Shown here: piece after piece, positions 14,901 through 62,985 of the stretch
Layout of the letters: the number at the start of each line of letters is the position of its first letter
How positions within the stretch are numbered: position 1 is the first letter of the stretch
Assembly: GCA_950097015.1 (NCBI GenBank)
Contig: CATNEN010000003.1
Location: 3,720,001-3,784,000 of the forward strand
DNA length: 64,000 nucleotides
Origin: Macrostomum hystrix
Lineage: Eukaryota > Animalia > Platyhelminthes
Reading direction: 5' to 3'
Program-made: the position numbers and the translations under genes
The notes under the pieces: generated by a model
Database searches by the model: none
Told to the model about the DNA's origin: nothing
Seen by the model: the letters and a program-made list of their open reading frames with translations, nothing else

Positions 14901-17900
14901 CGTTTTCGCCTTGAATTCGCGTCAAATCGTTGAACATGGCGTCGTTTTCAGCTTTGAATTTCTTGCTCAACTCATCCTGCTGTTTGAGCTGATTCTCCAG
15001 CTTGCCAATAGCCTGCTGCAGTTTGTTAATCTCTTCGTCCTTCAGGTCCAGCTCAGCGTAGAGCTCTTCTACTTTGTTGGGATCATCGGTGGCGCTAGGC
15101 CTGGCCAGGATAGAGCTGGGCTGCATGATGGGGGCCGGCACAGCGCCTGGACCTGCGGCCGGCGTGCCAACAGCCGAGTCTGGAGCCTCAACATCGGCGT
15201 CCGTCACCTGCGATGATTTGGATAGGTCGAGATATTCAGCGACTGTTGTCGAAGACCCTGGTGATAAGGACGACTAACATTGCTCTGCTAAAAAACAAAA
15301 TTGTCTATTGGATCCCGACGAGAATCGTTTAATATCTTGGCGATGTTGATATTATTCTAGAATTTGTATAATCAAATTGTAAAGAAAAAATTGCCCGTGT
15401 TCTGAATTTTGCTTGGTGATTGGTTTAATATTTTTAAATATTAAAACTGATGCATTACAGAGTTAAGTATCGTGCTATAAAGGATACAAATCATTTCAGT
15501 GGGGTCAAGAATTCGTGAGTCCGAGTTTTTAAGATACACTAAATAAAAGAATAACTGGGATTAATGAAATAACTAGGAACAACTGTACACTAACCTGCTC
15601 ATGCGCCTCCACCCGCTCGCCCTGTCGCCAGCGAACTAGTTCGGCGCGCAGAGCGGCCACAATGCCCAATAGTCGGTCATTCTTGGCCTTCTCAATCTCG
15701 TAGCGCCTCTGCCATTCCTCGGCTGTGAGTTGAATCTGTTGAGCCACCGAGTTCTTGATAGTCTTGGCCCGGACGCCGAACATCAGAGTAGACTTAGTCT
15801 CGGAAGCATTGTAGGACGCTGGAGAGCAGCAGATTAGCATAGTAGTCTTGGCGTTGCCACCCAGCGACTCTTGCAGAATGCGAGTCAGCTTGGAGTCACG
15901 ATATGGCACGTAGGCATTGTTCTCAACCAGGGCGTTGATGACATTGCCCAGAGTAGATAGAGATTTGTTAATCATCTTGGCCTCGTCTAGGGTGACACCT
16001 TCGGCGCCAGTCTTTGACACCTTCTCGGAGCCGGCCAAGTCGACCAGGTGGAGCTTGCCGAATAGAGTCTGTTGATCCTCAGTGTTGGTGCGCTTGATTT
16101 TGATCATGAATACTCGGTGACTGCGAGAGCTGACAGCGTTCATGTCTGCATTGAGCCAATAGGAGATAGGGTAACTGCCGTTATCATGCGTTTAGCATTG
16201 ACTTAATCATAATGGGATCATAGTCTGTTTGATTTGAGGATAATGGAATAAATGAGGATCTATTCGACTATTTTGGGATAACAATATTTCGAAATGATGG
16301 AATGACAACAGTTTGATTTGAGGATAATGGGATAAATGAGGATCTATTCGACTATTTTTGGGATAACAATATTTCGAAATGATGGAATGACAACAGTTTG
16401 ATTTGAGGATAATGGGATAAATGAGGATCTATTAGACTATTTTTGGGATAACAATAGATTGATTTCGACATGATGGAATAAAAACTGTTTGATTTGAGGA
16501 TGATGGGATAAATGAATGATAGAGGACTTTGGGACAACGAAAGATTGATTCCAGTAGGATGGAATGACAATTGTTTGATTTGAGGATAATCGGAAAACAG
16601 TCTACTTATTTGTAGATATTGGGATAACAGTCGATTTACGTGGGGATAATTTTGGGGATAAAATAATAATTCGATTGATTTGGGGATAATCTGATAAAAG
16701 CTGTTTGATTGGAGGATTATGGGAAAAAAATCTTGTTGATTTTGGGTATTTGGATGTACTAACCAATTGGTTTTTGGTATGATAATATGAGACAAAATGA
16801 TTAGTAATAAGAGAATTTCAGACGATGAAGTTAAGCTAAAAAGCATCGAATAAATAGTTTGAATTGAATTTGGAATGTATGCCAAATAACTAAAAGACAT
16901 CCACACACAAAGTTTGGGTCATTATGATGCCTCTAGCGATTTGGTAGTGATAATTTAGCACAGGTACTACACCGATGGCGACATTTTTTTCAATTAAGCA
17001 GTCACCATGGCTCTAGGATGTGCTTTGTTGTGTTTGCGGCTTCAGAAACTATAAATAACTCACTCGTAGCTGTCACGTGACAGTTCATGCGACCCTTCTG
17101 GATGGTCTGGAAGATTTCGTCCGGATTCCACACTTGCACTTCGGTGACGCCCTGTCATTTGAAGAAGTTTTAAGAGGGTTCATATAATGTTTATAGGGTA
17201 TAAAGACAACAAAATAAAGGAATAAAAAAAAGAACAACAGGAAGAGCAGCAAGAGGGGGCTAAAAATTGCTAGTCCGATATACTAAATACGCCATAATCC
17301 AAAATCTAAGTACTATTATTAACAGTACTTAGAACTACCAAGGGTCCCAACTGATTTTTGTCCTGCACCCGAAAGAAACAACGCAAGCACATTAAACTCA
17401 AGAATACAGGCCAACTTTTTGTTGCGCATCTTCTGAAACAATAATCAAGTCACTAGCTTGTCAGACCGTCGATATTTTCAATGTTTCTGGCCGAATGTCA
17501 GATTTTTCCCATAAGTGTTACTGTTAGTATATTTCATACACCCCAATACACGAATTAGCACTGCGCCTCAGTGTGGCCTTGCCAGACCTTCAAACTTTAT
17601 CAACATGTCACCCGAATGTGCCTGCATCATCTCCGACTTCGGTGACCAACCTTTATCTACCTTTTTTAGAACATTTTTAAGCTTTTATCTTAAGCTTTTT
17701 TAAGGACAGCGCAATGCATAATTGGGATTCAAATACTATAAATATTCAACCACAGTGAAATCAAATTCAAAGTGAGTTCTTACCTTAATATAGGGTACTC
17801 GCTTCTCTGTCTCGTGAATTGGTAGATTAGTATTAGAACTATTTAGCAGATCTTGAATCTTTTCCATGTAGAGCTCCACATAAGAGACTTCGATTTCGAA

Positions 17901-42837: not shown

Positions 42838-45800
42838 ATGGTCAGTTTGCACTCGCTAGTATTGTTCGCAGGTCTGTGTGGGCTCATTGGAGTCCAATGC
42901 TACAGCCGCTATACATACAAATATCTGGGCTGTTTTGTTGACAACACTGGAAGCGTCAGGGACATCGACGGACTGATTGGTGTCAGCAAACTTGGCAACT
43001 TTCCGGTCAGTTCGTCATGGGCATTGTCATAGCCTTCATGCAGTATTCTTAATCCAATCACTGACGTTTTTCGCGCGGGCAATAGTTCCAATTTCTGCAT
43101 AGAGCTCTGAATCTAGAAACTGGACAGACAATCCCCGCCAAACTCTCATTTTCCGGACCAATATGGGCTGACTGGCTGTCCCGAAAATACACTGAGCAGA
43201 TTGGAAGGTGCAGGGGTCGGTGGCAGAGCGGTTGTCGCGTTGGCCTCTCGCACCACGGTCCCTAAGTTCGATTCCACGGCGAGGCCACATTGATTTGGTG
43301 CGCAGCCGCGGAGAGAAGGCTTGTGGGCTTGTTGTGCAATTTACGCCCTTGAGGGCCAACATCCAAGGCACAGTGAAATGTACACTGCCTGACGATAAGA
43401 AAGTCAGGGCAGGTGTACACACCTGTGTGAGTGTGTGCCTGCGTTTAGTATCTGTGTGCCTGTGTGCTGAGGAGTCAGTGAAATGGGCAGAATTGCCTCC
43501 TCGCTGGCTGCGGGTCTAGTGTCACCAAATGATGTGCCACTGCCCGCAGCCCTCCTGCAATTATTATTATTATATTATTATAAGCAGATTGGAAATTTTA
43601 ATGCAATAGTTGGTGAGAATCAATAATAACTTCTGCATCGTGCAACAGATTTTCAAAATGTTTGTGTTTTTGGAAAGCCGAATAAATTCTATACGTTTTA
43701 GTTGAAGCCTGTTCGTCTACTTGTTTTGTCTATAAGTGAGCTGTGCTTAAAAAAGTTTAGGCAAGACAAAAATGCATCTTCAAGACATGTATTGTTAGGC
43801 TCCGCGTGTTGAAACGAAGTTGAAGGCAGCCCGCCCGCTGCTGTTGTCTATGGTCGAATTCCATAGAATTCCATAGCTACACGCCTCGCTTCTATCAATA
43901 TTGGTATATTCTAAAATTTTTAATGCAGAAATGTTTCTTTTTTTCCACTTATTTTGAAAAGTCTAATTGTTCATTCGATAGGCATTGCTGTTTTCTACAA
44001 TATAAGCTAAATTTCACTAAAATTTGTTGTTTTATAAAAAACTGTCTGCATGACAGCTTTCAAAGAATGTAGGCTTCATTTTTTCACTTTTTTTATTTCC
44101 ATCTAGCACAGCTCACTATATAGACCTGGTTGACGCACAGGCTTCAGCAGAAACCTATGAAAAAAATTTCACGATACGGAAATTATTAGTTTTATAATAA
44201 CTATATAACTATATTATATCAAAATTTCGTATCTGCTTAGTGTATTTTCGGGACAGCCATAGCAGCCGATCGTTTAGGGGAATTTTCTCCCCAGTTTCCA
44301 GAAATTAGTATAACAGCAACTATGATAGCTTTAGATCTAAATTCTATTCTTTTATTTTATGATTCACGACTATAAAACAACTCCACTGGTGAGCTGCAAA
44401 CAGTTTGGACATGTATTTCTTGATTGCAAATATTTTATTCTCAGGTTGAAAATATTGCCGCGGTATTGGAACTCAGCCTCATGACGCCCAACTACTGCTC
44501 AGCCATCTGCTCAATGGGAGGCTTCAGCTACTTTAGTGTACAGGCTGAAGCCTACTGTTTCTGCAGCTGGGCGTACGGCAGGCAGGGTCAAGCTAGTGAG
44601 ACCGACTGCTGGAGTTCTTGTAGAGGAAATAACTCGATTAAATGTGGCGGCTGGGATCGGAACTCTGTCTTTGCGATGAACTACAATACAGGTGATGAAT
44701 GAATTTAATGTGACTCACTATTATATTGGGATCTCTACTCAGAGCTCTCGTGTCAAGTTGGGATCATTTATTTAAATCATTCGATTCCATTAATTCAGAT
44801 GATTCCTTATACGAAAGCCAAGTAACTGGAGTGGAAGCCTACTACTAAATTCCTCTTTTCCACACCTTACACCAGGGGTCGGAAAACTCCGGCCCGCGGG
44901 CCAGATGCGGCCCTCGAAGCTCCCAAATCCGGCCATTTGCCCCTTCCAACACCTATAGTATCCTGTCTTATCTCTCCCGTGTCTCATCTCTCCCATGTCT
45001 CATCTCTCCCGTGTCTCATCTCTCCCGTGTCTCATCTCTCCCGTGTCTCATCTCTCCCGTGTCTCATCTCTCCCGTGTCTCATCTCTCCCGTGTCTCATC
45101 TCTCCCGTGTCTCATCTCTCCCGTGTCTCATCTCTCCCGTGTCTCATCTCTCCCGTGTCTCATCTCTCCCGTGTCTCATCTCTCCCGTGTCTCTTTCTCT
45201 CCCATGTCTCATCTCTCCCATGTCTCATCTCTCCCGTGTATCATCTCTCCCGTGTCTCAACTCTCCCATGTCTCATCTCTCCCATGTCTCATCTCTCCTA
45301 TGTCTCATCTCTCCCGTGTCTCATCTCTCCCGTGTCTCATCTCTCCCGTGTCTCATCTCTCCCATGTCTCATCTCTCCCATGTCTCATCTCTTCCGTGTC
45401 TCATCTCTCCCGTGTCGTATCTCTCCCGTGTCTCATCTCCCGTTATCTCTGTCTCTTTCTCTCCCATGTCTCATCTCTCCCGTGTCTCATCTCTCCCATG
45501 TCTCATCTCTCCCCTTTCTCGTATCTCCCGTTATCTCTGTCTCTTTCTCTCCCATGTCTCATCTCTCCCGTGTCTCATCTCTCCCCTTTCTTGTATCTCC
45601 CGTTATCTCTGTCTCTTTCTCTCCCATGTCTCATCTCTCCCATGTCTCATCTCTCCCATGTCTCATCTCTCCCGTGTCTCATCTCTCCCGTGTCTCATCT
45701 CTCCCGTGTCTCATCTCTCCCGTGTCTCATCTCTCCCGTGTCTCATCTCTCCCTTATATCATATTTCTATAATGCGGCCCGCTGTCGTCTTTTAGATTCT

Positions 45801-47319
45801 CTCTTTGGCCCGCCAGCAAATAAGTTTGCAGACCCCTGCCTTACACACTGCTTAATTACCAGTTGACGCTGTAAATAGACGAGTTGTATAACACGAACCA
45901 ACCAGAGTGAAGACAAAATAGATTTATAAAAAAAAAATTTCTAGACTTGTCAAGTTGGATTAGGGGATATATCCCCCATTTTCCTGATTGAATGGTGGTG
46001 ATTATTATTCCGGAACGTGAGAATATTAAGGGTACATGATTTCTGCTCTAATTAAAAAAAACCAACTTTTTTGTTTTTTTCCTTACAAAAAGCAAAAGCT
46101 ATAGTCCCCCCGGCAATGGGCTGATCCCGTTTGGTAGCGAAGGAAAAATCTAGATTTAATGCGCAATCGGGATAGGCGAGGCAAAACAGCCTACTGTTGT
46201 GAGTAGCGCGATGCGCAATCAACTCTAGGCCATGGTAGCAGAGGTCGAAATGATCTAGGCTTTGCCACCCGACTCGAACTCAGACTGCACTCATCGAAAA
46301 CTCGAATTTACAGCCATGGCTGTCATACCCTAAGTCTTGCACATAATCAATAGTCTATGGTCTCTGCCACCCGACTCGAACTCAGACTGCACTCATCGAA
46401 AACTCGAATTTACAGCCATGGCTGTCATACCCTAAGTCTTGCACATAATCAATAGTCTATGGTCTCTGCCACCCGACTCGAACTCAGACTGCACTCATCG
46501 AAAACTCGAATTTACAGCCATGGCTGTCATACCCTAAGTCTTGCAAATAAGCAATAGTCTATGGTCGATGTCACTCTAATGATTCCCTCTCAGGCTGCAC
46601 TCTTCCAAAACCCGTATGTGATTTTGTATCGTGAGAAACCTGAAAAACATTGGAGCTTCATTTATAATACAAGACACTAAGGTTCATTTATACGAAAGAT
46701 ACCAGAAAGGGTATTGGGAGTCTGCACAAACATATTTCTAGGAAATACAAGACACATGAGTTTAACAAAGATAACAAAGCTTTACTTGATAGAACGAGTC
46801 GTGCGCCTTACTAACTGTCTTCAAGCTGCCTGGACAAAAGCTCTCCTTTGTTTGTGAGCCCCATCCGTGCAACTATAGGATTTTCCGAAGGGAGGGGCGG
46901 ACTAAAGTTGAATCATCCTGGACGCTTGCGGTGAAAAACTTGCTTGGTCCTCACACCGAAATATATTTTGGGTCAACCCGCGGAAGAAGGGCAGCACCCC
47001 CCTGGTTGCGCCAGTGAGCGCCACAATTGTCAGCACTGAAATTTAATTTCAAATACAACAATTCTTAGAAAACAGTTGCCCTTCGTTTCGTCTGGAGACC
47101 GGTCGGCCTCGGCTGGAGGTGAGCAGCTCTTACAGCCTCCAGACCTACTGGACGACGGCAGCCAACGACGCTCCGGACTGCGTGTCGAAGTGCGGCATCG
47201 CCAGTCGCTGCCAGGCGGTGCTGTTCCAGCGAGATGCCCGACTGTGCCACCGGCTGAGGTTCTCGCTGATGCCCGACCAGCTGGTGAACATCAGCGGCGA
47301 TTTCTTCGTTCGAGTTTGA
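42838..47319 (+). CDS. secreted WSC + PAN/Apple-like protein, copy A (~221 aa)
   Basis: Exons 42838-43005, 44445-44691, 47069-47319 (phases 0, 1). Signal peptide; WSC pattern YLGCFVD...MTPNYCSAIC...YF.VQ...CFC...C...C.G.....CGG..RNSVF; last exon with the C-x3-C-x5-C..V.F......C pattern of PAN/Apple-like modules. Confidence 0.85.
43207..43582 (+). mobile_element. SINE family 2, full length with TSD
   Basis: A box TGGCAGAGCGG, B box AAGTTCGATTCC, 3' stem-loop, (ATT)n tail, and a 12-bp TSD AGCAGATTGGAA at 43195-43206 and 43583-43594. Confidence 0.92.
44873..45838. mobile_element. hAT (Charlie-like) MITE with internal 17-bp minisatellite
   Basis: Termini CAGGGGTC / GACCCCTG, subterminal GGCCCGCGGGCC, and exact 8-bp TSD CCTTACAC at 44865-44872 and 45839-45846. 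Confidence 0.9.
44962..45753. repeat. 17-bp minisatellite (GTCTCATCTCTCCCGT[GT])n
   Basis: Tandem array inside the MITE. Confidence 0.95.
46263..46566. repeat. 102-bp unit x3
   Basis: TGCCACCCGACTCGAACTCAG... starts at 46263, 46365 and 46467. Confidence 0.9.
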
Positions 47320-47387
47320 GGAAAAATGATCACTAAAATCATGCGACGAAACTAAAACGAGATTTTTAGTTAATTGTTTTTGTTGGA

Positions 47388-47753
47388 AATAATAATTGCA
47401 GGAGGGCTGCACGCAATGGCACATCATTTGGTGACGTTTGACCTGAAGCCAACGAGGAGGCAATTCTGCCCATTGCGCTGACTCCTGAGCACACACACAC
47501 GCACACACACAGATACTGTACGCAGGCACGCGCTCACAACAGGTGTGTACATCTGCCCGGACTTTCTTATCTTTAGGCAGTGTACACTCTCACTGTGCCT
47601 CAGAGGTTGGCCCTCAAGGGCGTAAATTGCACGACAAGCCCGTTAACCTTGTCTCCGCGGCTGCACACCAAATGAATGTGGCCTCACCGCGGAATCGAAC
47701 TCATGGACCTTTGTGCAAGAGACAAACGCGTTAGACAGCTCTGCCACTCACCC
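47388..47753 (-). mobile_element. SINE family 2, full length (more diverged)
   Basis: Reverse complement with tail at 47388-47396 and A/B boxes at the right end. Confidence 0.85.
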
Positions 47754-47814
47754 TACAAGAATCACTGCTGAACACTTCATTTCCAACTGCTATAAAGATT
47801 TGCTTATCAGACCA

Positions 47815-48010
47815 AGGAGCTTGTATCTCTCTCTGAAAGGAGTGGTCATGAGTTCGAATCCCATGCAGACCTATTGAAACTTTTTTTGCCTTTGAGAAAG
47901 ATAATTGATTCCATTTGGTGCTTCAATTCACCCAGCTGTAGAATGGATAACTTCTAAGGTAAAACTATGGATGAAATTATTGGGAGCCCTCATACTGAAC
48001 GCATCGTTTG
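47815..48010 (+). mobile_element. degraded CORE-like SINE (family 1)
   Basis: B box GAGTTCGAATCC and TGCTTCAATTCACCCAGCTGTAGAATGG; homologous remnant follows gene B. Confidence 0.6.
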
Positions 48011-49104
48011 GATGATCAACCCATTTTACCATATTTAGTTTTACTTCTCTTTTCCAGTTTGCTCTGTGTGTGTAATTTCCTTTTGTTCTGAATTCTCGCC
48101 TTATTTTTTCACTTCTCAATAAATATAAGCTGGACAACATCTTCTTGATTTCCAGGTTTTTCTGGAAATACTTAAACATTTTAGCAGGTTATTTTGCTTA
48201 TTTTTTACTTTTTATCTGACCTAATGTCACAGCAAAACATGATCCTATGGCCATGGTTGTAGACATGATGAACAGTTCCTTGAAGAGCAGGCAGGCTGGG
48301 TCTTCTCCCAACATGGTCGGTCAGCATCTCGCCTATCAACTTCGAAGGCCGACGATCACCGACGCCGCCGCTGCTGTCCAGTCAAGATGACGTACGGATC
48401 CCTCGTTAGGCTCCAGCAGCAGGACGTCTGGCACTTGCGCTGTAACTGAAGCTGGTCGAAAAGTGCTTCGGAGTCGAACTCCAGACGGCCAAACTGGGGC
48501 GTCCGTGACGATCGGCGAAGGCCGCCTCGAGACCGGCCTGGCCCGGCTTCCGCTGTCGTTTAGCATGTTAGGCGTCCCGCCGGGACGGATGATCCAAGAA
48601 GCGGCCGCCAAAAAATTTCCACGAAAGCTGAGTGTCACGTCCTGCAAACTACTATAGTAGTGACGCAGCGTGATAGGCCCGAACATCGCAACCGGACAGC
48701 AGCGGAGGCTGCAGCAGCCGCAGCCGGGCTGGAAGAGGCCATCGGTATCTTCAAGCCGATACGATCTGCAGGCTGCTATTCGAATCTGGAGCTATTTTTC
48801 AGAAACTCTAATTACCAACCAAATGCCTTGACGACCACGCTATGGCTCAGCACTGACAGCAGTTAATCGACAGAGTGTCATCTGGATCAATGTTTAACGG
48901 TCAGAGCATAAGGATCTTAAGACAGTTTGATTGATACATATGAAGGCTAGGATTGAAATAGCACCTGCTCCCATTGGTCGCTCAGTCGGGGTCAGTTTTA
49001 ACTGAGCTGGAAGGAAAGCAGCTAGTTTGTTTATAACAAGCCAAACCTGCTCATGGACCTGCGGCATAGCTTCAGGTATCTGAATTCAGAGCTATTAGCT
49101 TAAC

Positions 49105-51202
49105 ATGGTCAGTTTGCACTCGCTAGTAATGTTGGCTGGTCTGTGTGGGCTAATTGGAGTCCATTGTTATACGTACAAATATCTAGGCTGTTTTGTTGAC
49201 AATGCTGGCAGCGTCAGAGACATCGACGGACTGATTGGCGTGAGCAAACTTGGCGACTTTCCCGTGAGTTCTGAGAATTTTCATTGTCTCTATACAGTAT
49301 TTTAAATTCCACCATAGTTTGAGTCTCTATGTATCCCCCATTTTCCCGGCAAAGGCAAGAAATTCATTATTTCTCTCGTCCCAACGAACCATAGACGAAC
49401 TACAAAAACAGCAAACGGGCGATACATGCAATACTTTCCGAATGATTCAGTTGTCTAGGGCAAAGGCTCGAGGTGTCGCGATTATTGTCCGAGATAAATT
49501 ATTTAGTGTCGCGACATCAACAAGGGTCTAATCCAAGTGATGAATGCCTGCACTATTTTCCATTTATCTCGTGTACAGGACAATAAATGTTTAGGCAGCT
49601 CGTTTGAGCGGTAAACCGCTTTCAATGTTTCACGTCACTCAAAGCAGGTTAGAATCAGACAAGTAACCAGTTGAGACATTTGGGACAACGCAGGTGATAT
49701 TGCTAGATCTGAATTCTACCCTTTGTTTCGATTCAGGGCTGTTAAACGAACTTTGTAGGCTGCGAAGCATAAAGACATGCATTTTCGATTGCAAATATTT
49801 GATCCTCAGGTTGAAAATATTGGCGCGGTACTGGATCTCAGCCTCATGACGCCCAACTACTGCTCAGCCATCTGCTCAATGGGAGGTTTCAGCTACTTCG
49901 GTGTACAGGCTCAAGCCTACTGTTTCTGCAGCTGGGAGTACGGCAAACAGGGTCAAGCCGAAAATGCTGATTGCTCGCACAGTTGCAGAGGAAATAACTC
50001 GATTAAATGTGGCGGCTGGGATCGAAACTCTGTCTTCGCGATGAACTACAATACTGGTGATGAATGAATGAGGCAGTATTGTTGTGTTGATTTTTAGCTG
50101 TGTTAAATAACGGAAATAGCAGTGGTTGGGTTGTATTTGCTTTTTGGAAAGACAGTTCCGATAGCTGTCCCTCAGCCGGAGACAGGGTCTGACGTAGAGA
50201 AATGCATGATATTGAATGTAACTATGAATCGAAGTGTATATTTATAGAGATGAAAAATGACGGTTATGGGAATGGCGCGTGGATGAAAATGCCTGCTGCA
50301 AATTGGTACTGCCTTATCTGCTGTAGCTACATCCGGAGACTTTAGGCTTTAGCCAGGCTTTAGATGCCTGATAGAAACGGCTTCTTCCTGCCCTGGTCTC
50401 ATTTTCATGTTGAAGAACTATGTGCTGTGCCTGACGACATTGTAGCGTCCGGAGTTTGGGCTCTTCCAATGGCGAAACATTTCCTATTTTTCGTGGGCTC
50501 CGGAGTCTTGACTAAGACGTGTGGGAAGCGCTGGGTTTTTGCGGGTTAATCTCGTGAATGGGTTAACTCCTATTTCTTTGGTTGAGATGTGCATTGGTGT
50601 AGAGCTAGGGTTGATCCTTGTTCCTTAAGCATTGCTTCAACAGTAAAAAAACAACGCTACTGGGGAAAGACCAAGGGGATATTTTAAATACCCACAGCCC
50701 ACTTCGCGATAGCTCCCAAAATTAGCTCCCAATACAAGCCTGAATGGCGAATCCATATTGGTCCGATCAACGCGCCAAGATCCAGGGTCAGATAAAAAAT
50801 AAACGATTTTAATTAATGCAGTATCAAAAACCAACAATATTCGGAAAAAACTACATTTTGCTCAACCTGCCTTCCAGAAACCAGCAGAAAAATGTGCAAA
50901 AAAACGTTTTTGGAAGCACTAAATTTTAATTTCAAATATAACAATTCTTAGAAAACAGGTGCCCTTCGTTTCGTCTGGAGACCGGTCGACCTCGGCTGCA
51001 GGTGAGCAGCTCCTACAGCCTCCAGACCTACTGGACGACGGCAGCCAACGACGCTCCGGACTGCGTGTCGAAGTGCGGCATCGCCAGTCGCTGCCAGGCG
51101 GTGCTGTTCCAGCGAGATGCCCGACTGTGCCACCGGCTGAGGTTCTCGCTGATGGCCGACCAGCTGGTGAACATCAGCGGCGACTTCTACGTTCGAGTTT
51201 AA
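49105..51202 (+). CDS. secreted WSC + PAN/Apple-like protein, copy B
   Basis: Exons 49105-49263, 49810-50056, 50952-51202; same phases and Cys pattern as copy A. Confidence 0.87.
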
Positions 51203-51299
51203 GGCACAATATTGCAGGATTAAAATCATGCGAGGGATCTATAGCTATATTTTTTTTAACAGTTTCTCACTTTACGATGACGAAAATGACGAAAGTTGC

Positions 51300-51495
51300 G
51301 TGCATCTCTCTCTGAAAGTAGTGGTTATGAGTTCGAATCCGAGGCTCCCCAATCGAGATGATGCGTGTCCTTAATCAAGACACTTAATTTCGTTCGGTGC
51401 TTGAGTTCATTCAGCTGTAAAATAGATACCAGCTAAGGTAAAAATTGTCTTGGTGAAATAGCGGCCTTCAGACTGAACAGCCTTACACAGCCGAA
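51300..51495 (+). mobile_element. degraded CORE-like SINE (family 1)
   Basis: GAGTTCGAATCC ... GTGTCCTTAATCAAGACACTTAA ... TTCATTCAGCTGTAAAATAG ... GACTGAACAGC, matching 1144-1440. Confidence 0.7.
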
Positions 51496-51793
51496 TCTGC
51501 AGGTGAAATTTCTATCCACCTATCTTACTAGAAAAGTAAAATAATTTTCTATTCTCTATTCAGTTTGCCCTTTCTGTATTTTCGCTGTGTCCTAATCTTG
51601 CACTTCTAAAGAAATAAACCCTTGACAATATCTATCAGTTTTTTGTCAAATATTGCAACTTGTTGCGAATCCCGTGTCTGTGTGTTAATCAATCAAATCA
51701 AGTCACTTGATTTGCTACCGACAACTCTAAGGAGCTGACTGTGACACAAAATATCACTAGAATGCTTTTTCGTTTTTTCTTCTAGACCGATAC

Positions 51794-52506
51794 TGATGCG
51801 CGCGTAAGCTACTCTCTCTGTGAAGAAGTGAAAGTAGCCATAGACTATCACCGAATTGATGCGCGCGTAAGCTACTCTCTCTGTGAAGAAGTGAAAGTAG
51901 CCATAGACTATCACCGAATTGATGCGCTCGTAAGCTACTCTCTCTGTGAAGAAGTGAAAGTAGCCATAGACTATCACCGAATTGATGCGCGCGTAAGCTA
52001 CTCTCTCTGTGAAGAAGTGAAAGTAGCCATAGACTATCACCGAATTGATGCGCGCGTAAGCTACTCTCTCTGTGAAGAAGTGAAAGTAGCCATAGACTAT
52101 CACCGAATTGATGCGCTCGTAAGCTACTCTCTCTGTGAAGAAGTGAAAGTAGCCATAGACTATCACCGAATTGATGCGCTCGTAAGCTACTCTCTCTGTG
52201 AAGAAGTGAAAGTAGCCATAGACTATCACCGAATTGATGCGCTCGTAAGCTACTCTCTCTCTGTGAAGAAGTGAAAGTAGCCATAGACTATCACCGAATT
52301 GATGCGCTCGTAAGCTACTCTCTCTCTGTGAAGAAGTGAAAGTAGCCATAGACTATCACCGAATTGATGCGCTCGTAAGCTACTCTCTCTGTGAAGAAGT
52401 GAAAGTAGCCATAGACTATCACCGAATTGATGCGCGCGTAAGCTACTCTCTCTGTGAAGAAGTGAAAGTAGCCATAGACTATCACCGAATTGATGCGCGC
52501 GTAAGA
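51794..52506. repeat. 63-bp minisatellite x~11
   Basis: Unit TGATGCGCKCGTAAGCTACTCTCTCTGTGAAGAAGTGAAAGTAGCCATAGACTATCACCGAAT. Confidence 0.97.
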
Positions 52507-52861
52507 ATTTCTGCAAAACCTAAAACCAACGGTAATAGTCTATGGCTACTTTCATGTCATCACAGAGATATTAGCTTACACGTTGTCAATAGAAATCTGC
52601 CAAAAACGACAAAATGACAATGGACTTTCAAAATAATTGTCGATGACTGCCCTCTGCAGCCTCTGCAGGATTTGAGGGGTTAGGGCCATATTATACATTT
52701 GAAGGCTAGAATTAAAATAACTTTTGTCTAATCCTGAGACCCTCTCTGAGCCATGTTTCCATCTCTGCTCCCATTGGTGGCTCAGTCGGAGCAGGAAAAA
52801 TAAACTTATAAGCAGTCAAAACTGGATTTCAAGCATCTGAATTTAGAGCTCCTTGCTCAGC

Positions 52862-53871
52862 ATGCTCAGTTTGCACTCGCTAGTATTGTTCGCAGGTCTG
52901 TGTGGGCTCATTGGAGTCCAATGCTACAGCCGCTATACATACAAATATCTGGGCTGTTTTGTTGACAACGCTGGCAGCGTCAGGGACATCGACGGACTGA
53001 TGGGTCTCAGCAAACTTGGCAACTTTCCAGTGAGTTCTGCATTGGCATTGTCATCCATTGTCTCCATGCAATATTCTAAATTCCATCTATGACTTAGAAC
53101 TTCTCGATTGCAAAATTTTTTTTATTCTCAGGTGGAAAATGTTGGCGCCGTACTGGACCTCAGCCTCATGACGCCCAACTACTGCTCAGCCATCTGCTCA
53201 ATGGGAGGTTTCAGCTACTTCGGTGTACAGGCTCAAGCCTACTGTTTCTGCAGCTGGGAGTACGGCAAGCAGGGTCAAGCCAATAATGCTGATTGCTCGG
53301 ATAATTGCAGGGGAAATAGCTCGATTAAATGTGGCGGCCAGAATCGGAACTCTGTCTTCGCGATGATCTACAATACAGGTGATGAATGAATGCGGATGCT
53401 GGTATTGTGGGCTTACTGTTCTATTGAGATCAATAGTCAAGGCCTCTCGTATCTCGTATCAATCTTATTTAAATACGTGGAAAGCGTTACATATGAACCA
53501 AAGAATTAACAACTTGCTTGTGAAAAAAATAAAAAAACGTGCAACAATGTCTAAAATATTGTCTAAACTAAATAAACTAAATCTAAACTAAAATATGGTT
53601 TAAAATCTAACAATTCTTAGAAAACAGTTGTTCTTCGTTTCGTCTGGAGACCGGTCGACCTCGGCTGCAGGTGAGCAGCTCCTACAGCCTCCAGACCTAC
53701 TGGACGACGGCAGCCAACGACGCTCCGGACTGCGTGTCGAAGTGCGGCATCGCCAGTCGCTGCCAGGCGGTGCTGTTCCAGCGAGATGCCCGACTGTGCC
53801 ACCGGCTGAGGTTTTCGCTGATGCCCGACCAGCTGATGAACATCAGCGGCGACTTCTACGTTCGAGTTTGA
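52862..53871 (+). CDS. secreted WSC + PAN/Apple-like protein, copy C
   Basis: Exons 52862-53029, 53132-53378, 53621-53871; compact introns; phases 0, 1. Confidence 0.88.
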
Positions 53872-54559
53872 TGAATGAAACATTTGTTTTGGATTTGAAC
53901 TACTTGAGGTAACTACAATAGTAGGTTTGATTAATTTTTTTGTTTGCAGGATGACGAAACGAATACCAGCCAAACGGAAACCAATGTTCCCGCCTAATGA
54001 ATCACCTTGATTCCATAATGCTTCTGTTTATCTTAGCAACAGACTATACCCATCTATTTTGTAAGAAAGTTATAGTATGCTTTCCTTCTCTATATAGTTT
54101 GCCCTAAAGAACTATAAGCAGGACTTTAGACTTCTTGTGATGAATTTTTACTTTATGACAGAACTTATGTCCCGACCAATGCTATTTGTCATGCATGTGT
54201 GAGCTGATATGGAGTTTCCATTGGCTCACGCATTTATTGCTCGGAGAATAAAACGTCCGTTGCATCTATCATTGCCCACTTTTGTATCAAATTATCTAAG
54301 TAGTTATCTCTAGCTCAGCTGAAACAATAGTTGCAGATGGCTGTACGGAAGCGAAAGATAAAATCGGTATTTTATTAGCTTAATTATTAAACTCTGAGCT
54401 GAGGACAATGTCCTGGCTTGGTCAACGCGGGCAATGGCTTCTAAATGATGGTAAAGCCAGCATTCTATTAGCGAGTAAAAATGTAATTAATGTGACGATG
54501 CCAAACAGTGCCTGCCTGAAAACAATAAAAAAAGTCAACCACCCACATCAAGGAAAAAT

Positions 54560-55450
54560 TATCAGCTAGCCTCAGAACACATTCATCAGCTCAGAACACA
54601 TTCATCAGCTCAGAACACATTCATCAGCTCAGAACACATTCATCAGCTCAGAACACATTCATCAGCTCAGAACACATTCATCAGCTCAGAACACATTCAT
54701 CAGCTCAGAACACATTCATCAGCTCAGAACACATTCATCAGCTCAGAACACATTCATCAGCTCAGAACATATTCATCAGCTCAGAACACATTCATCAGCT
54801 CAGAACACATTCATCAGCTAGCCTCAGAACACATTCATCAGCTCAGAACACATTCATCAGCTCAGAACACATTCATCAGCTCAGAACACATTCATCAGCT
54901 AGCCTCAGAACACATTCATCAGCTAGCCTCAGAACACATTCATCAGCTCAGAACACATTCATCAGCTCAGAACACATTCATCAGCTCAGAACACATTCAT
55001 CAGCTCAGAACACATTCATCAGCTCAGAACACATTCATCAGCTAGCCTCAGAACACATTCATCAGCTAGCCTCAGAACACATTCATCAGCTAGCCTCAGA
55101 ACACATTCATCAGGGAGCCTCAGAACACATTCATCAGCTAGCCTCAGAACACATTCATCAGCTAGCCTCAGAACACATTCATCAGCTAGCCTCAGAACAC
55201 ATTCATCAGCTAGCCTCAGAACACATTCATCAGCGAGCCTCAGAACACATTCATCAGCGAGCCTCAGAACACATTCATCAGCTAGCCTCAGAACACATTC
55301 ATCAGCGAGCCTCAGAACACATTCATCAGCTAGCCTCAGAACACATTCATCAGCGAGCCTCAGAACACATTCATCAGCGAGCCTCAGAACACATTCATCA
55401 GCGAGCCTCAGAACACATTCATCAGCTAGCCTCAAAACACACTTATCGGC
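54560..55450. repeat. 19/24-bp minisatellite (AGAACACATTCATCAGCT[AGCCT]C)n
   Basis: 19-bp units on the left and 24-bp units on the right. Confidence 0.97.
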
Positions 55451-55705
55451 TAGTAGAAGGAAGGCAATTTTCTTCGGCATGTACTTCATACTATAAGTAG
55501 TGTAGTTGTGATATAACTATTATACTCACTGATAGATAGAAAATACACACTGAAGATACGTCGAAGATACTTGTTTGTGTTTGCTCCTATTGGTTAATAG
55601 CTTCTCAGCATCGAAGCCTAAATAAATGAATTATTTATTGTGCCTTTTCTGCTCAACAACGTACCTCTTTAATTAGTGATTAACGAGACAACTGTAAACT
55701 TCAAC

Positions 55706-58700
55706 ATGCTATCGGTGATTATATTTGCTGGCCTATTCGTTAGTGCAAGCTGCTACACCCGATTTTCCTACGTCTATCTGGGCTGTTTCGCTGACAACAC
55801 AAACCAAGTTAGGGACATATTCGGACTATTTGGCGTCGAGAAACTTGGCGACATTGTGGCGAGTATTTTATGAGATGGCTGTTCGACTTGCAGTACTTGA
55901 ATCAGAGCTGTTTTCTGTGTTGCCTAGACAACTTACACCGGAAAGCAGTGAAGCAAACAGGGAAATCATAAAATTGGAGAATCCCTTGTCCTATCATATA
56001 CAATCGGAGGGATATCATAAAATTGGGGAATCCCTTGTCCTAGTATATACTCGTACAATCAGAGGGATGTCCTAAAATTGGGGAATCCCCTGTCCTACTA
56101 TTTACAATCGGAGGGATATCCTAAAACTGAGGAATCCCTTGTCCTGGTAAATACAATCGGAGGGATATCCTAAATTTGGGGAATCCCCTGTCCTACTATT
56201 TACAATCGGAGGGATATCCTAAAATTGGGGAATCCCTTGTCCTAGTATATACAATCGGAGGGATGTCTAAAATTGGGGAATCCCTTGTCCTAGTATACAC
56301 TCGTACAATCAGAGGGATGTCCTAAAATTGGGGAATCCCTTGTCCTGGTAAATACAATCAGAGGGATATTTCCTAAAATTGGGGAATCCCCTGTCCTACT
56401 ATATACAATCGGAGGGATATCCTAAAATTAGGGAATCCCCTGTCCTACTATATACAATCGGAGGGATATCCTAAAATTGGGGAATCCCTTGTCCTATCAT
56501 ATACAATCGGAGGGATATCATAAAATTGGGGAATCCCTTGTCCTATCATATACAATCGGAGGGATATCATAAAATTGGGGAATCCCTTGTCCTAGTATAT
56601 ACTCGTACAATCAGAGGGATGTCCTAAAATTGGGGAATCCCCTGTCCTAGTATATACAATCGGAGGGATGTCCTAAAATTGGGGAATCCCTTGTCCTTAG
56701 TATATACAATCGGAGGGATGTCTAAAATTGGGGAATCCCTTGTCCTAGTATATACTCGTACAATCAGAGGGATGTCCTAAAATTGGGGAATCCCTTGTCC
56801 TGGTAAATACAATCAGAGGGATATTTCCTAAAATTGGGGAATCCCCTGTCCTACTATATACAATCGGAGGGATATCCTAAAATTGGGGAATCCCCTGTCC
56901 TACTATATACAATCGGAGGGATATCCTAAAATTGGGGAATCCCTTGTACTATCATATACAATCGGAGGGATATCCTAAAATTGGGGAATCCCTTGTCCTA
57001 TCATATACAATCGGAGGGAAATCATAAAATTGGGGAATCCCTTGTCCTATCATATACAATCGGAGGGATATCATAAAATTGGGGAATCCCTTGTCCTAGT
57101 ATATACTCGTACAATCAGAGGGATGTCCTAAAATTGGGGAATCCCCTGTCCTAGTATATACAATCGGAGGGATGTCCTAAAATTGGGGAATCCCTTGTTC
57201 TAGTATATACAATCAGAGGGAGGGATATCCTAAAAGTTAGGGAATCCCAGAGGGATTATCCTACAGTTTGGGGAATCTCTCCCCAGCACTAAGGATTGGA
57301 AGGATATCCTACAGTAACAAAGGGACAATGTGCTAAAATTTCAAACGTCAACAATTACCAGGTTATTAACGGTGTGGTGCACAACACAACCAGCATGACC
57401 CCAGTACTGTGCTCAACCGTCTGCTCATTTGGGGGTTTCGCTTACTTCGGCCTTCAGGCAACAGCCTACTGCTTCTGCGGTTGGAACTACGGCTCGCAGG
57501 GTCGGGCAGCTGAGACCAGTTGCTATGAGAGGTGCACAGGAAATATTTATGAAATATGCGGCGGCCAAAATAGGAACTCGGTCTACGCGCTGTCCTACAA
57601 TACCGGTGCGTTTAATACCGGAGTGTAATTAGCAATTGGGTCGATTAAAATAATCCTTCCAATATAATTATCAGCTACTAAAAGCCGGGGCACTACAGAT
57701 ATAAAAGCACATCCTGTCACTAAGCGATTCCTTCAGACACCAGCCCCACCAAACCAGTTTTTGATGACACACTGTGTATTGTGAACCTTCTTAATAGCTG
57801 AAGCAGAATTGTCAATTTCTGTTTGAGAAGCTGTATTTGTGGGTGGGTGGAGACTGTATAGTAGACCAGCTATTGATTCAGTGAAGTGAAGCCAAGCCAA
57901 AAATGTCGTTTTGGTTGGTGCTTGCTCTGCAGCAGATGGTAACAAAGCTGTTAGAACAAAATCAATATTGCAATATTGCTTACACTCGCATCACTTGCGA
58001 GGCATTACACCAGACCACTTTTTAGAGAAGCTAAAATGCGAATAAGGATTGTATAATAATAAAATAAAACTATTTTTATGCATTTTCAAGTCTCCATCTC
58101 TCAAATTATCATCATAGTGCTTTTGATAATTTGCTAATGACGTGTCCATCATTGATGTTAACAATAATGATAAAATTGCAGGATGCAGGATGCAGGATAA
58201 TGCAGGATGACTGCAGACAATGGCACATTATTTAGTGACACTAGACTTGTAGCCGGCGAGGAGGCAATTCTGTCAGGATGACACAGGGGAGAGATGAGAC
58301 AGGGGAGAGATGAGACAGAGGAGAGATGAGACAGGGGAGAGATGAGACAGGGGAGAGATGAGACAGGGGAGAGATGAGACAGGGGAGAGATGAGACAGAG
58401 GAGAGATGAGACAGGGGAGAGATGAGACAGGGGAGAGATGAGACACGGGAGAGATGAGACACGGGAGAGATGAGACAGGGGAGAGATGAGACACGGGAGA
58501 GATGAGACAGGGGAGAGATGAGACACGGGAGAGATGAGACACGGGAGAGATGAGACAGGGGAGAGATGAGACAGGGGAGGGATGAGACACGGGAGAGATG
58601 AGACACGGGAGAGATGAGACACGGGAGAGATGAGACAGGGGAGAGATGAGACACGGGAGAGATGAGACAGGGGAGAGATGAGACAGGGGAGAGATGAGAC

Positions 58701-59504
58701 AGGGGAGAGATGAGACAGGGGAGAGATGAGACAGGGGAGAGATGAGACAGGGGAGAGATGAGACACGGGAGAGATGAGACAGGGGAGAGATGAGACAGGG
58801 GAGGGATGAGACACGGGAGAGATGAGACACGGGAGAGATGAGACACGGGAGAGATGAGACAGGGGAGAGATGAGACACGGGAGAGATGAGACAGGGGAGA
58901 GATGAGACAGGGGAGAGATGAGACACGGGAGAGATGAGACAGGGGAGAGATGAGACAGGGGAGAGATGAGACAGAGGAGAGATGAGACAGGGGAGAGATG
59001 AGACAGGGGAGAGATGAGACAGGGGAGAGATGAGACAGGGGAGAGATGAGACAGGGGAGAGATGAGACAGGGGAGAGATGAGACAGGGGAGAGATGAGAC
59101 AGGGGAGAGATGAGACAGGGGAGGTGAGACACGGTAGAGTCGCTGTTGAAACGGGGTTGCGAATTTAGGGGGCCACAAGTGGGACGCGGGTCGGGGGGTT
59201 GCCAACTGCTGACTTAGGCGATGATATCGACTTCGTGATGCCTGACTTTCCAGAAAGCAGTTGTCCTTTGTTTCGTCTGGAGACCGGTCGACCTCGGCTG
59301 CAGGTGAGCAGCTCCTACAGCCTCCAGACCTACTGGACGACGGCAGCCAACGACGCTCCGGACTGCGTGTCGAAGTGCGGCATCGCCAGTCGCTGCCAGG
59401 CGGTGCTGTTCCAGCGAGATGCCCGACTGTGCCACCGGCTGAGGTTCTCGCTGATGCCCGACCAGCTGATGAACATCAGCGGCGACTTCTACGTTCGAGT
59501 TTGA
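55706..59504 (+). CDS. secreted WSC + PAN/Apple-like protein, copy D (divergent WSC)
   Basis: Exons 55706-55858 (GC donor G|gcgagt, or GT donor after 55855), 57362-57605, 59254-59504; WSC cysteines conserved. Confidence 0.82.
55960..57280. repeat. ~50-58-bp minisatellite (AAATTGGGGAATCCCTTGTCCTAGTATATACAATCGGAGGGATATCCT)n
   Basis: About two dozen units filling intron 1 of copy D. Confidence 0.95.
58200..58272 (-). mobile_element. SINE family 2 3'-end fragment
   Basis: TGGCACATTATTTAGTGACACTAGAC...GCGAGGAGGCAATTCTG; cut off by the 17-bp array. Confidence 0.65.
58276..59132. repeat. 17-bp minisatellite (GAGAGATGAGACASGGG)n
   Basis: Reverse-complement relative of the 44962-45753 array; intron 2 of copy D. 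Confidence 0.97.
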
Positions 59505-59844
59505 TGAACTGACTGGCTGAAACAGGATTCACAATTTTTTCCATCGTGACTAAATAAATATTCAATTATATCAGTCTGTTCAGGTGTGCTTGTTTTTACG
59601 CTCGCATTGGCCACAGGTTTGGACTCCTAAACGAGAGGTCAGGAGTTCTTGTCGGAGTGCAAAATAAATAAGTTTCTGCCATTGAGCAAGACACTAAATT
59701 TCTCTTTGCTTGAGTTCAATCTTTAAAAAAATATAAAAAGTGGTTGTGAAAAGATGGTAACAAGCATTTGCTTGGGTTGAAATCTACGAGTAAATGAATT
59801 TCTAGAAATACAGGGACTCTGTTACAAAACGAATTAAATGACAA

Positions 59845-60470
59845 GGAATTCCTTAGCTGAGGGAGTTCCCTATAATTACCGAATCCAGTTGAAATGGAAT
59901 TCCCTCAGCTAGGGAGTCCCCATAATTAGTAAATCCAATTCAAATGGAATTCTCTAAGCCAGGGAATCCCATAACTAATAAATCATATTCAAATGGAATT
60001 CCCTAAGCCAGGGAATCCCATAACTAATAAATCCAATTCAAATGGAATTCCCTAAGCCAGGGAATCCCATAACTAATAAATCCAATTCAAATGGAATTCC
60101 CTAAGCCAGGGAATCCCATAACTAATAAATACAATTCAAATGGAATTCCCGAAGCCAGGGAATCCCATAATTAGGTTATCCAGTTCAAATGGAATTCCCT
60201 CAACTAGGGAATCCCCATAATTAGGTTATCCAATTCAAATGGAATTCCCTCAGCTAGGGAGCCCCCATAATTAGTAAATCCAATTCATATGGAATTCCCT
60301 CAGCCAGGGAATCCCCATAATTAACCATAACTAGTGAATCCAATTCAAATGGAATTCCCTCAGCCAGGGAATCTTCACAGTTAGCGAATCCCGAAAAGTC
60401 ATTCAGTTAGGGAATCCCCATTAAGCGAAGCAAATTCAAATGGATTTCATTAAGCTAGGGAATTACCAGT
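59845..60470. repeat. ~49-bp minisatellite (AATGGAATTCCCTAAGCCAGGGAATCCCATAACTAATAAATCCAATTCA)n
   Basis: About 12 units with degenerate edges, upstream of copy E. Confidence 0.9.
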
Positions 60471-60961
60471 AATTTGAGAAACCGTAAATAAGTGAGTAAA
60501 TTAGTTTCAAGAGTTGTAAAACAGAGCACAATTCTCTGCAGTTTCTACTAAGCAGTAGTTGCTTCGCTGCAAATGACTATATCCCGATGTAAATCTATGG
60601 AATAGAAATTCCATAGTCTGGTTCCTAGGATTTTGTTAAAATATTGGGCCCATGGCAACGCAATTTTACAATAAACGAACAGAAGCAAGCTCAATCTAGA
60701 AATTGTCAGAGAGAGACCATTCTCAAGGTTACCTATTGAGTTCTGAAATATTTTTGTTACAATGCACTGGCTATGGACAGTAGCGGTGCAACTGACTGCA
60801 ATTCAACAAGTTCTTGGACATCGCCAGTACGCTTATAACTTTGTTGCTGCTACATTGACGATGTGGACAAACGGGACGTCAACGGACTGGTTGGTGTCTC
60901 GAGAATGGCCGACTATCTTGTGGGAATCTGTGGGTCCTTTTGGCATCCATACTAAACTGGA

Positions 60962-61519
60962 AGAGTGACAGGATGAGAGTGACATAGTGAGAAAGTGACA
61001 TAGTGAGAGAGTGACATGGTGAGAGAGTGACAGGGTGAGAGTGACAGGGTGAGAGAGTGACATGGTGAGAGAGTAACATGGTGAGAGAGTGACATGGTGA
61101 GAGAGTGACAGGGTGAGAGAGTGACAGGGTGAGAGAGTGACAGGGTGAGAGAGTGACAGGGTGAGAGAGTGACAGGGTGAGAGAGTGACATGGTGAGAGA
61201 GTGACAGGGTGAGAGAGTGACAGGGTGAGAGAGTGACAGGGTGAGAGAGTGACAGGGTGAGAGAGTGACATGGTGAGAGAGTAACATGGTGAGAGAGTGA
61301 CAGGGTGAGAGAGTGACAGGGTGAGAGAGTGACAGGGTGAGAGAGTGACAGGGTGCGAGAGTGACAGGGTGAGAGAGTGACATGGTGAGAGAGTGACAGG
61401 GTGAGAGAGTGACAGGGTGAGAGAGTGACAGGGTGAGAGAGTGACAGGGTGAGAGAGTGACAGGGTGAGAGAGTGACAGGGTGAGAGAGTGACAGGGTGA
61501 GAGAGTGATATGGTGAGAG
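60962..61519. repeat. 16-bp minisatellite (GTGAGAGAGTGACAGG)n
   Basis: About 34 tandem units. Confidence 0.97.
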
Positions 61520-61560
61520 TTATGGGAATCAATTGGAGGGATCAACGAAAATAAAGGGAT

Positions 61561-61943
61561 CCCATTCCTAGTGAACCCCTTCAGAGGAACATCCTACTGT
61601 AGGGGAACGCCATTCCTAGTGAAGCCCTTCAGAGGAACATCCTACTGTAGGGGAACGCCATTCCTAGTGAAGCCCTTCAGAGGAACATCCTACTGTAGGG
61701 GAACGCCATTCCTAGTGAAGCCCTTCAGAGGAACATCCTACTGTAGGGGAACGCCATTCCTAGTGAAGCCCTTCAGAGGAACATCCTACTGTAGGGAAAC
61801 CCCATTCCTTGTGAAGCCCTTCAGAGGAACATACTACTGTAGGGGAACTCCATTCCTAGTGAACCCCTTCAGAGGAACATCCTACTGTAGGGGAACTCCA
61901 TTCCTAGTGAACCCCTTCAGAGGAACATCCTACTGTAGGGGAA
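61561..61943. repeat. 48-bp minisatellite x8
   Basis: Unit CCATTCCTAGTGAAGCCCTTCAGAGGAACATCCTACTGTAGGGGAACG. Confidence 0.97.
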
Positions 61944-62985
61944 CAGCGAGATGCCCGACTGTGCCACCGGCTGAGGTTCTCGCTGATGCCCGACCAGCTG
62001 ATGAACGTCAGCGGCGACTTCTATGTTCGAGTTTGATGAACTGACTGGCTGAAACAGAATTCAGGTGTTTTTTTCCATCCTAAAACACATTGTAGTTTTT
62101 TGTTAGAGGTTTGAACCCCTAAGAGGTTTGAACCCCTAAACGTGAGGTCTGGAGTCTCAAGAGGCTGAGGTTATCGAATGTGCCTATACAGTTGGAGGAA
62201 ATGATTTGTGACTTCTGTGTTCCAAACTGAGTAGAAATCTAATGTGCATATTTGTTGATATCAATGTTAAGTTGTGAGATGTTAAAATACTGTAGTAATC
62301 TATTATTGACTCATTCACACAGACATTGTACGCAGGCACATAACTCGAGCCTTCCAGAAATATCGCACAAATACAGGAAGACAGGACTATGTCAGCTAAT
62401 ATATTGTTGATTATATTTTTTATTGCTCGCCACAGAGCGTGTTTAGTCTAAAATGATGCAGGTATTCGGGGTCTATGCTCACTGCAAATTAATTTTTCTG
62501 TATTCTATATCTATCTCCGCCATTACTTTAGCATTCATTCATAAAGTCAAAGTTTTGAAGGCCCTCATAAGTTTATTCTGCCTCTAATTATTTATTGTCG
62601 TTATTATTTTGTAATTTCTCTTCACTAAAATAGGAAAATATCTCTTTACCATTGAATGACAAATTAATTTCTTTAGTCAGGATGCAAAAAATTTCACCGA
62701 CTCTTTACTGTCCATACGCTCGTATGTGCTTTGGTCACCTGTTTATCAGGATGTACATTTTTCAAGCAGTCTGATTATTTACGGTGTACATTTTATATGT
62801 CCACTGATCTGAAACATCTAGCTCGTTATAACAAGTGGCTATCCGCTTGGTAGCTTGCCCATAAGACACTCTGCCAAATGATAAACACTGCTGGTAGCAA
62901 GACTTTCCTGACATGAAAATTCTTTTTAGAATTTCGCTAGGACCAAAAACTTCTAACAGTAGGTAACTCGATAGGTCCAGCAAGC

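Follow-up and report, generated by a model that had tools for sequence, protein, structure and literature searches.

The WSC-PAN gene cluster described here, from the flatworm Macrostomum hystrix, carries a last exon that is nearly identical in every gene, although in one of these genes, gene D, the other two exons have diverged from those of its neighbors until their silent sites are saturated. The cluster occupies 42.8 to 62.1 kb of a stretch of 64,000 nucleotides (nt) of genomic DNA (GenBank assembly GCA_950097015.1, contig CATNEN010000003.1, positions 3,720,001 to 3,784,000 of the forward strand), which is referred to here as the window and supplies all coordinates unless another contig is named. 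It comprises four intact three-exon genes, A to D, in tandem on the same strand, along with a decayed relic, E. Between genes C and D, only 4 of 251 nt differ in exon 3 (4 of 246 in the codon alignment; synonymous divergence, or dS, of 0.017), compared with 138 of 396 in exons 1 and 2 (Fisher P = 1.5e-28; P = 2e-13 when the contrast is restricted to synonymous changes). Recurrent interlocus gene conversion confined to an island of homology at exon 3 is the probable explanation for this near-identity, and we put its probability at about 80%. The exons of the intact genes, with the evidence for each, are as follows.

42838 to 43005, plus strand: gene A exon 1, putative signal peptide and beginning of the WSC domain (start codon ATG, open frame, GT donor)
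44445 to 44691, plus strand: gene A exon 2, WSC core (AG/GT borders; Pfam WSC match with an expect value, E, of 8.5e-12)
47069 to 47319, plus strand: gene A exon 3, PAN/apple, homogenized (AG acceptor to stop codon; PAN_1, 22.1 bits)
49105 to 49263, plus strand: gene B exon 1 (open frame, splice borders)
49810 to 50056, plus strand: gene B exon 2, WSC core (open frame, splice borders, similarity to the other copies)
50952 to 51202, plus strand: gene B exon 3, PAN/apple, homogenized (exon comparison; genome match)
52862 to 53029, plus strand: gene C exon 1, A-like (open frame; splice from 53029 to 53132 in exon-only contigs of runs X2 and X4)
53132 to 53378, plus strand: gene C exon 2, B-like WSC core (splice borders; exon-only contigs)
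53621 to 53871, plus strand: gene C exon 3, PAN/apple, D-like, homogenized (4 of 251 nt different from D; k-mer depth about 3 to 4 times that of the unique flanks)
55706 to 55858, plus strand: gene D exon 1, old and diverged (62 to 65% nt identity to A to C)
57362 to 57605, plus strand: gene D exon 2, old and diverged WSC core (Pfam WSC E of 9.7e-13; 55 to 58% amino acid identity to A to C)
59254 to 59504, plus strand: gene D exon 3, PAN/apple, homogenized (homology to A to C from 59252 to 59508-59512)

Over all six pairs among A to D, exon 3 diverges by 1.6 to 3.6%, and dS, which like nonsynonymous divergence (dN) was estimated by the Nei-Gojobori method pairwise for each exon, ranges from 0.017 to 0.088. 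Exon 3 of D is 96% identical to that of A and 97.6% identical to that of B. For exons 1 and 2, D differs from A to C at 34 to 38% of nt and about 42 to 46% of residues (about 55% amino acid identity), with a dS of 0.83 to 1.30, a dN of 0.34 to 0.41, and a dN/dS of about 0.3 to 0.45. Exon 2 alone, which gives no blastn match between D and A to C, has a dS of 1.06 to 1.22, and exons 1 and 2 among A to C have a dS of 0.05 to 0.37. Because the silent sites of its exons 1 and 2 are saturated, D is an old paralog with an overwritten last exon. Fisher tests were preferred for these contrasts, since a Sawyer-type run test on polymorphic sites had few such sites in the converted exon of D. A preliminary description of this DNA had estimated by eye about four differences between C and D in the 251-nt last exon and differences at roughly half of the residues in exons 1 and 2 of D, and it had predicted, if conversion were restricted to one exon, a dS near 0 in exon 3 and a high dS in exons 1 and 2. 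The first number is exactly 4, silent sites included, the second is in line with the measured 42 to 46%, and dS is sharply lower in exon 3 of D rather than similar across all exons, the outcome that the preliminary description had named as speaking against it.

The same description had proposed trees for each exon, and the topologies obtained for WSC and PAN do disagree. In the WSC tree, A, B, and C form a clade (support of 100/98) and D lies on a branch of 0.77, with a path from D to C of 1.63 that is about equal to the paths from D to family members on other contigs. All of A to D are within 0.046 of one another in the PAN tree. Of the 13 variable sites in exon 3, 5 lie within its first 14 nt and 5 within its last 56 nt, and positions 60 to 190 contain none, although these intervals were chosen post hoc. 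Two of the sites separate A and B from C, D, and E, that is, by neighborhood, and private changes number 5, 2, 2, and 2 per copy. Searches of the whole 220-Mb genome (220,453,370 bases in 42 contigs) located the DNA of exon 3 at five positions within this cluster and nowhere else, which rules out a dispersed element.

Exons 1 and 2 of A to C have been exchanged as well. Exon 1 is 95% identical between A and C, and informative sites group A with C rather than B with C by 13:2 in exon 1 but B with C rather than A with C by 20:6 in exon 2 (P = 2e-4). Gene C is thus a mosaic of an A-like exon 1 and a B-like exon 2, and it follows that exchange is not exclusive to exon 3.

The tract that D shares with A to C extends from the acceptor AG (59252) to 4 to 8 nt beyond the stop codon. 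With blastn, no intron or flank homology was detected between D and A to C, in agreement with the earlier remark that the introns of D do not align with theirs, and the only match outside exon 3 was a weak block of 75% identity in exon 1. Genes A, B, and C share only their exons plus 10 to 60 nt of flank in the same kind of search. Minisatellite arrays, identified with Tandem Repeats Finder (TRF), make up a large part of the checked intron and intergenic sequence, including the second introns of genes A and D.

44964 to 45753, no strand assigned: 16-nt minisatellite in gene A intron 2 (TRF, 49.9 copies)
58277 to 59139, no strand assigned: 16-nt minisatellite in gene D intron 2 (TRF, 54 copies)

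The array in gene D ends about 115 nt before the converted exon 3. A single 16-nt minisatellite family is represented in the second introns of A and D and in relic E (60962 to 61519). The array of D is inverted relative to that of A, its unit being the reverse complement except for one base, and the translated motifs are found on opposite strands. Two other origins for the shared exon were considered and rejected. Unequal crossover as the source of D is ruled out by the lack of intron or 3′-flank homology alongside exon 3, and repair templated by cDNA is ruled out because the introns are kept and the tract ends at the stop codon, even though the 3′ untranslated region (UTR) of C reaches approximately 54121.

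Relic E retains recognizable pieces of the first and last exons, and comparison with the other copies found no exon 2.

60762 to 60916, plus strand: exon-1-like piece of relic E, frameshifted (tblastn E of 0.001; the reading frame switches)
61562 to 61944, no strand assigned: 48-nt minisatellite in place of the 5′ two thirds of exon 3 of E (TRF, 8 copies)
61944 to 62063, plus strand: remnant of exon 3 of E (the last 93 nt, 61944 to 62036) followed by 27 nt of 3′ flank resembling that of D (97.5% identity with D across 120 nt)

The exon-1-like piece has 48 to 54% nt identity to exon 1 of A to D, and the exon 3 piece is 96 to 98% identical to exon 3 of the live copies. Since this dead relic still carries an exon 3 piece of such high identity, the identity has been kept without selection on the protein. 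The 48-nt array directly adjoins the truncated exon (61562 to 62036) and has replaced two thirds of it.

The near-identity of exon 3 is not an assembly artifact. In contigs assembled from DNA run X1, the k-mer depth is 69 to 82 in the unique parts of gene C, approximately 150 to 168 in exon 1, which A shares, and in the exon 2 core, approximately 225 in the parts of exon 3 where B, C, and D agree and A differs, and approximately 293 where all four genes agree. Contig k-mer depth is not a copy number, and we used only the ratios within one DNA run. These depth steps match the places where the copies agree in the assembly, indicating that the copy-specific pattern of the assembly is present in the reads as well, and loose contig ends past exon 3 of gene C lead to the 3′ flanks of B and D. 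Exon-only contigs from three runs of a separate 2020 study, which were taken as RNA, contain the splice from 53029 to 53132 (GT..AG), exon 3, and the 3′ UTR of gene C to approximately 54121. Because these contigs span the junction, gene C is transcribed, and its first intron is removed as in the gene model. One exon-only contig bears a variant in exon 3 that does not belong to C, which hints that another copy in the cluster is transcribed too.

A mechanism consistent with these results would begin with D as an old paralog of A to C, as suggested by a dS near 1. Exon 3 of all of the copies, including relic E, would have been homogenized by recurrent nonreciprocal copying between neighbors, with the interlocus conversion itself probably being the repair of breaks templated by a paralogous exon. 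Introns and flanks appear to turn over fast, largely via minisatellites, so that they may lose alignability, and the converted tract coincides with the exon because the exon is the only homology left. High identity would then favor more conversion. Exons 1 and 2 of D may have become too dissimilar for conversion and then diverged under purifying selection, and gene C is a mosaic because A to C are still similar enough to exchange exons 1 and 2. Variable sites at the edges of exon 3 are the pattern that would be expected from repeated tracts inside an island of homology. Exon-restricted gene conversion had been put forward in the preliminary description, and it is borne out by the near-identity of silent sites, the disagreement between the WSC and PAN trees, and the termination of the tract at the edges of the exon.

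Several points weigh against this reading. Recurrent conversion and one recent replacement event are not fully separable, and the exon trees are drawn from the genome of one species. The junction between exons 2 and 3 of gene D and the expression of this gene are predicted from the genome only. The GC content at third codon positions (GC3) of the cluster gives no specific signal of biased gene conversion, since exon 3 is typical for the family (0.77 to 0.81 versus family means of 0.72 to 0.74). Finally, the two discordant neighbor pairs that we found in the wider family, this cluster being one, both have the PAN exon homogenized, which would be compatible with a bias of selective or mechanistic origin. 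Exons 1 and 2 of the cluster have a GC3 of 0.51 to 0.63, which is clearly under the mean of 0.72 for WSC exons in the rest of the family.

One alternative to recurrent conversion is a single recent event, in which D (and E) acquired an exon 3 of the A-to-C type once, by one conversion or exon replacement. The low and similar divergence of exon 3 across pairs (1.6 to 3.6%) and the 5, 2, 2, and 2 private changes per copy would fit one recent coalescence, but such an event needs homology in a target that was by then approximately 40% diverged, and the tract is common to all five copies. The two sites that split A and B from C, D, and E by neighborhood, the concentration of exon 3 variation at the edges, and the separate exchanges in other segments of A to C are likewise difficult to reconcile with it, and we regard a single event as very unlikely. 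It is highly improbable that D is a recent duplicate whose exons 1 and 2 and introns diverged very fast and whose exon 3 shows its true young age. Noncoding turnover is rapid here, as the introns of A to C are also unalignable despite their close exons. However, the silent sites of exons 1 and 2 of D are saturated (dS of 0.83 to 1.3) at a dN/dS of about 0.3 to 0.45, and the WSC exon of D is equally far from A to C and from members on other contigs. No germline process is known to us that would mutate two exons while sparing a third. Homogenization of the exon 3 copies by the assembly procedure, which the preliminary description had raised as a possible objection, is scarcely credible. The assembly (approximately 220 Mb in 42 contigs) derives from PacBio long reads of an inbred line, assembled with canu and polished with Arrow and Pilon (PMC10468722). 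Polishing can erase small differences between near-identical paralogs. However, it could not make 98% identity out of approximately 60%, each copy has kept its private differences, the raw-read k-mer depth steps to approximately 3 and 4 times the unique level exactly where three and four copies agree (approximately 4 times in the shared core of the exon), and paths in the read graph separate into the differing 3′ flanks of B and D.

The remaining alternative concerns function and has to be weighed against the wider family. Searches of the M. hystrix genome with each domain exon gave at least 150 matches (for WSC, 396 candidates at first look), and the WSC and PAN matches are paired and clustered on contigs C1, C15, C38, C39, C33, and others. 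As predicted from these matches, the WSC-PAN family is very large and this locus is one local cluster of small secreted proteins. Among 405 family pairs, mean identity is 0.475 for PAN and 0.563 for WSC, and the nearest PAN exon outside the cluster in the own-genome search (at least 150 matches) is only 53% identical. PAN is thus less conserved than WSC across the family, and a constant effector module is therefore not supported. Pairwise dN/dS in exons 1 and 2 of the cluster is 0.11 to 0.59 and gives no sign of diversifying selection, although a few selected sites could lie beneath these pairwise averages. A selected system of secreted lectins, in which PAN is held constant as a shared effector or oligomerization part while WSC diversifies and conversion is the means, is distinctly unlikely. 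What speaks for it is that both discordant pairs (this cluster and the pair at C15:1916126-1919613) have a homogenized PAN exon and diverged WSC exons, with no reverse case among the 405 pairs, and that PAN is more alike within clusters than between clusters. However, this sample consists of two cases only, and in addition to the low conservation of PAN and a dN/dS below 1 in exons 1 and 2, dead relic E retains a converted piece and exons 1 and 2 of A to C have been converted as well. The proposal of the preliminary description that a constant effector or oligomerization module is joined to a diversifying recognition module is thus not supported, on all four of these counts.

The second discordant pair of neighbors (L034:1890-2128 versus L049:1823-2061) has a PAN block that is 92 to 93% identical over 240 nt, whereas its WSC exons align over only 81 to 99 nt at 77 to 79%. 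At the amino acid level, identity is 0.95 for PAN and 0.51 for WSC. This two-gene unit is present three times, with further copies at approximately 27.195 to 27.201 Mb on C1 (L032/L050) and approximately 0.706 to 0.712 Mb on C15 (L033/L048). The three copies have WSC exons that are 100% identical, as would be expected of recent segmental duplicates or of haplotigs left uncollapsed. None of the 405 pairs showed WSC homogenized and PAN diverged, but two discordant cases are too few to establish a bias directed at PAN. We consider it unlikely that PAN-exon homogenization follows a directional rule throughout the family, under which PAN evolves in concert within clusters and the WSC exons escape. 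If it were, the products of a cluster might share a PAN-mediated partner or assemble via PAN, or breaks in the minisatellites beside the last exon might be repaired from paralogous PAN exons. With such a rule, the family, which numbers at least 150 genes, would amount to a natural system in which “constant” modules particular to each cluster are linked to diverged binding modules.

The preliminary description had counted five tandem copies encoding a signal peptide, a WSC domain, and a PAN/Apple-like domain; the tandem arrangement on one strand and the architecture stand, but only four copies are complete and the fifth is relic E. Exon 1 is 168, 159, or 153 nt long, exon 2 is 247 or 244 nt long, and exon 3 is 251 nt long in every intact gene, giving predicted proteins of 221 (A), 218 (B), 221 (C), and 215 (D) amino acids. 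The product of exon 1 has a hydrophobic N terminus, which was read by eye as a putative signal peptide, followed by the start of the WSC domain. Introns are GT-AG throughout A to D, except at the donor of exon 1 in gene D (55853 to 55864), which is GC (GCGAGT) where A to C carry GT; an in-frame GT is located 3 nt upstream.

Domain and homology searches were run exon by exon and not on the joined spliced proteins. Exon 2 alone matches WSC (PF01822) with 45.6 bits in A and 48.6 bits in D, compared with a gathering cutoff of 27.8; the matches span profile positions 20 or 23 to 82, and the first part of the domain is encoded by exon 1. The hallmarks of WSC domains are eight conserved cysteines and a CGG motif (PMC9024836). 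All four genes encode these eight cysteines, with one in exon 1 (YLGCF motif) and seven in exon 2, together with KCGG or ICGG. Exon 3 matches PAN_1 (PF00024) at 22.1 and 22.0 bits (E of 1.4e-4), barely over the gathering score of 21.4, and PAN matches of a family profile to PDB sequences are weak (E of 0.01 to 0.1). An AlphaFold2 model of the gene D exon 3 domain (predicted local distance difference test score of 84.8) consists of five strands with one helix, in keeping with the PAN fold, in which a beta-sheet surrounds a single helix and core disulfides hold the structure together. Its best Foldseek matches in the PDB are all PAN/apple (the N domain of HGF, Sarcocystis SML-2, plasminogen, and MIC4), with a probability of 0.99 to 1.0 for the top ones but an E of only near 1e-2. 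Four cysteines are invariant across 21 aligned PAN exons of the family. Both of the domain assignments that the preliminary description had suggested checking are thus above the gathering score, and the exon 3 model has the PAN fold. The WSC domain itself adopts a PAN/apple fold (PMC9024836), so that each protein would consist of two PAN-fold modules in series. As judged from their domains, the proteins of A to D most likely bind extracellular glycans or proteins.

Minisatellites are also abundant upstream of the cluster. Between 30000 and 42544, there are arrays with units of 41 nt (46 copies), 20 nt (70 copies), 23 nt (approximately 155 copies over 3.5 kb), and 21 nt (55 copies), and these long arrays are the reason for a strong negative GC skew at 32 to 41 kb. 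Farther upstream, on the minus strand at 11959 to 16143, open reading frames that encode a kinesin motor domain (E of 2e-53) and parts resembling coiled coils suggest a gene of the kinesin type.

Among 1.84 billion representative proteins, exon 3 has only 8 matches, the best at 51% identity, and five of these are Macrostomum lignano “WSC domain-containing proteins” of 149 to 219 amino acids in which WSC is followed by PAN_1. A search for homologous proteins with exon 2 of D and exon 3 of C, limited to a set length range and hence silent on longer relatives, gave no candidates. The preliminary description knew of no described family with this architecture; as a prediction from protein sequences, it is already annotated, although uncharacterized. 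The M. lignano proteins (such as UniRef100_A0A1I8G2U8, with 219 amino acids, and PAA93518.1) resemble those of the cluster in size and domain order and are 50 to 51% identical to exon 3, but they belong to another species, are only approximately 50% identical, and are uncharacterized. Some candidate seminal fluid proteins of M. lignano with prostate-limited expression carry WSC domains (Mlig-pro46 and RNA815_80.4) (PMC6953679, PMC4490696). These proteins are secreted and WSC bearing like those of the cluster, but they offer a lead on tissue only, and RNA815_80.4 has two WSC domains. The eight cysteines and CGG motif are found likewise in the WSC domains of yeast Wsc1 and human Kremen1, and the exon 3 model has the same fold as the PAN/apple domains of HGF, plasminogen, Sarcocystis SML-2, and Toxoplasma MIC4. 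Unlike any of these, the proteins predicted here are small and secreted, have two modules, and include no transmembrane region, kringle, or protease part.

The cluster provides a read-supported case in which conversion confined to an exon can make old paralogs mimic a “constant plus variable” design, which calls for caution in interpreting tandem families of genes for secreted, lectin-like proteins. The cluster also extends the view of a Macrostomum-specific WSC-PAN family that is very large and unstudied, and if a bias toward the PAN exon proved to be general, this family would be a good model for determining which parts of duplicated genes escape concerted evolution.

Variable-plus-constant families of immune type include the FREPs of snails, the VLRs of lampreys, and Dscam. 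The cluster is superficially like them in that a tandem family combines a diverged binding module with a shared module, but it lacks an excess of replacement changes, and its “constant” module is not constant across the family. The closer comparison is with the mosaics that interlocus conversion has produced in tandem paralogs, such as the human Gγ- and Aγ-globin genes, RHD and RHCE, and the exons of the red and green opsins. As in those mosaics, old duplicates share a sharply bounded segment that is nearly identical even at silent sites, trees differ between segments, and nonhomologous or simple-repeat DNA flanks the tract. The locus is a clean new instance of a known process, gene conversion, in an uncharacterized flatworm family and not a new recognition system. 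Unlike the globin, RHD/RHCE, and opsin mosaics, however, the tract here is one whole exon, shared by four genes and a dead relic within a minisatellite-rich flatworm cluster.

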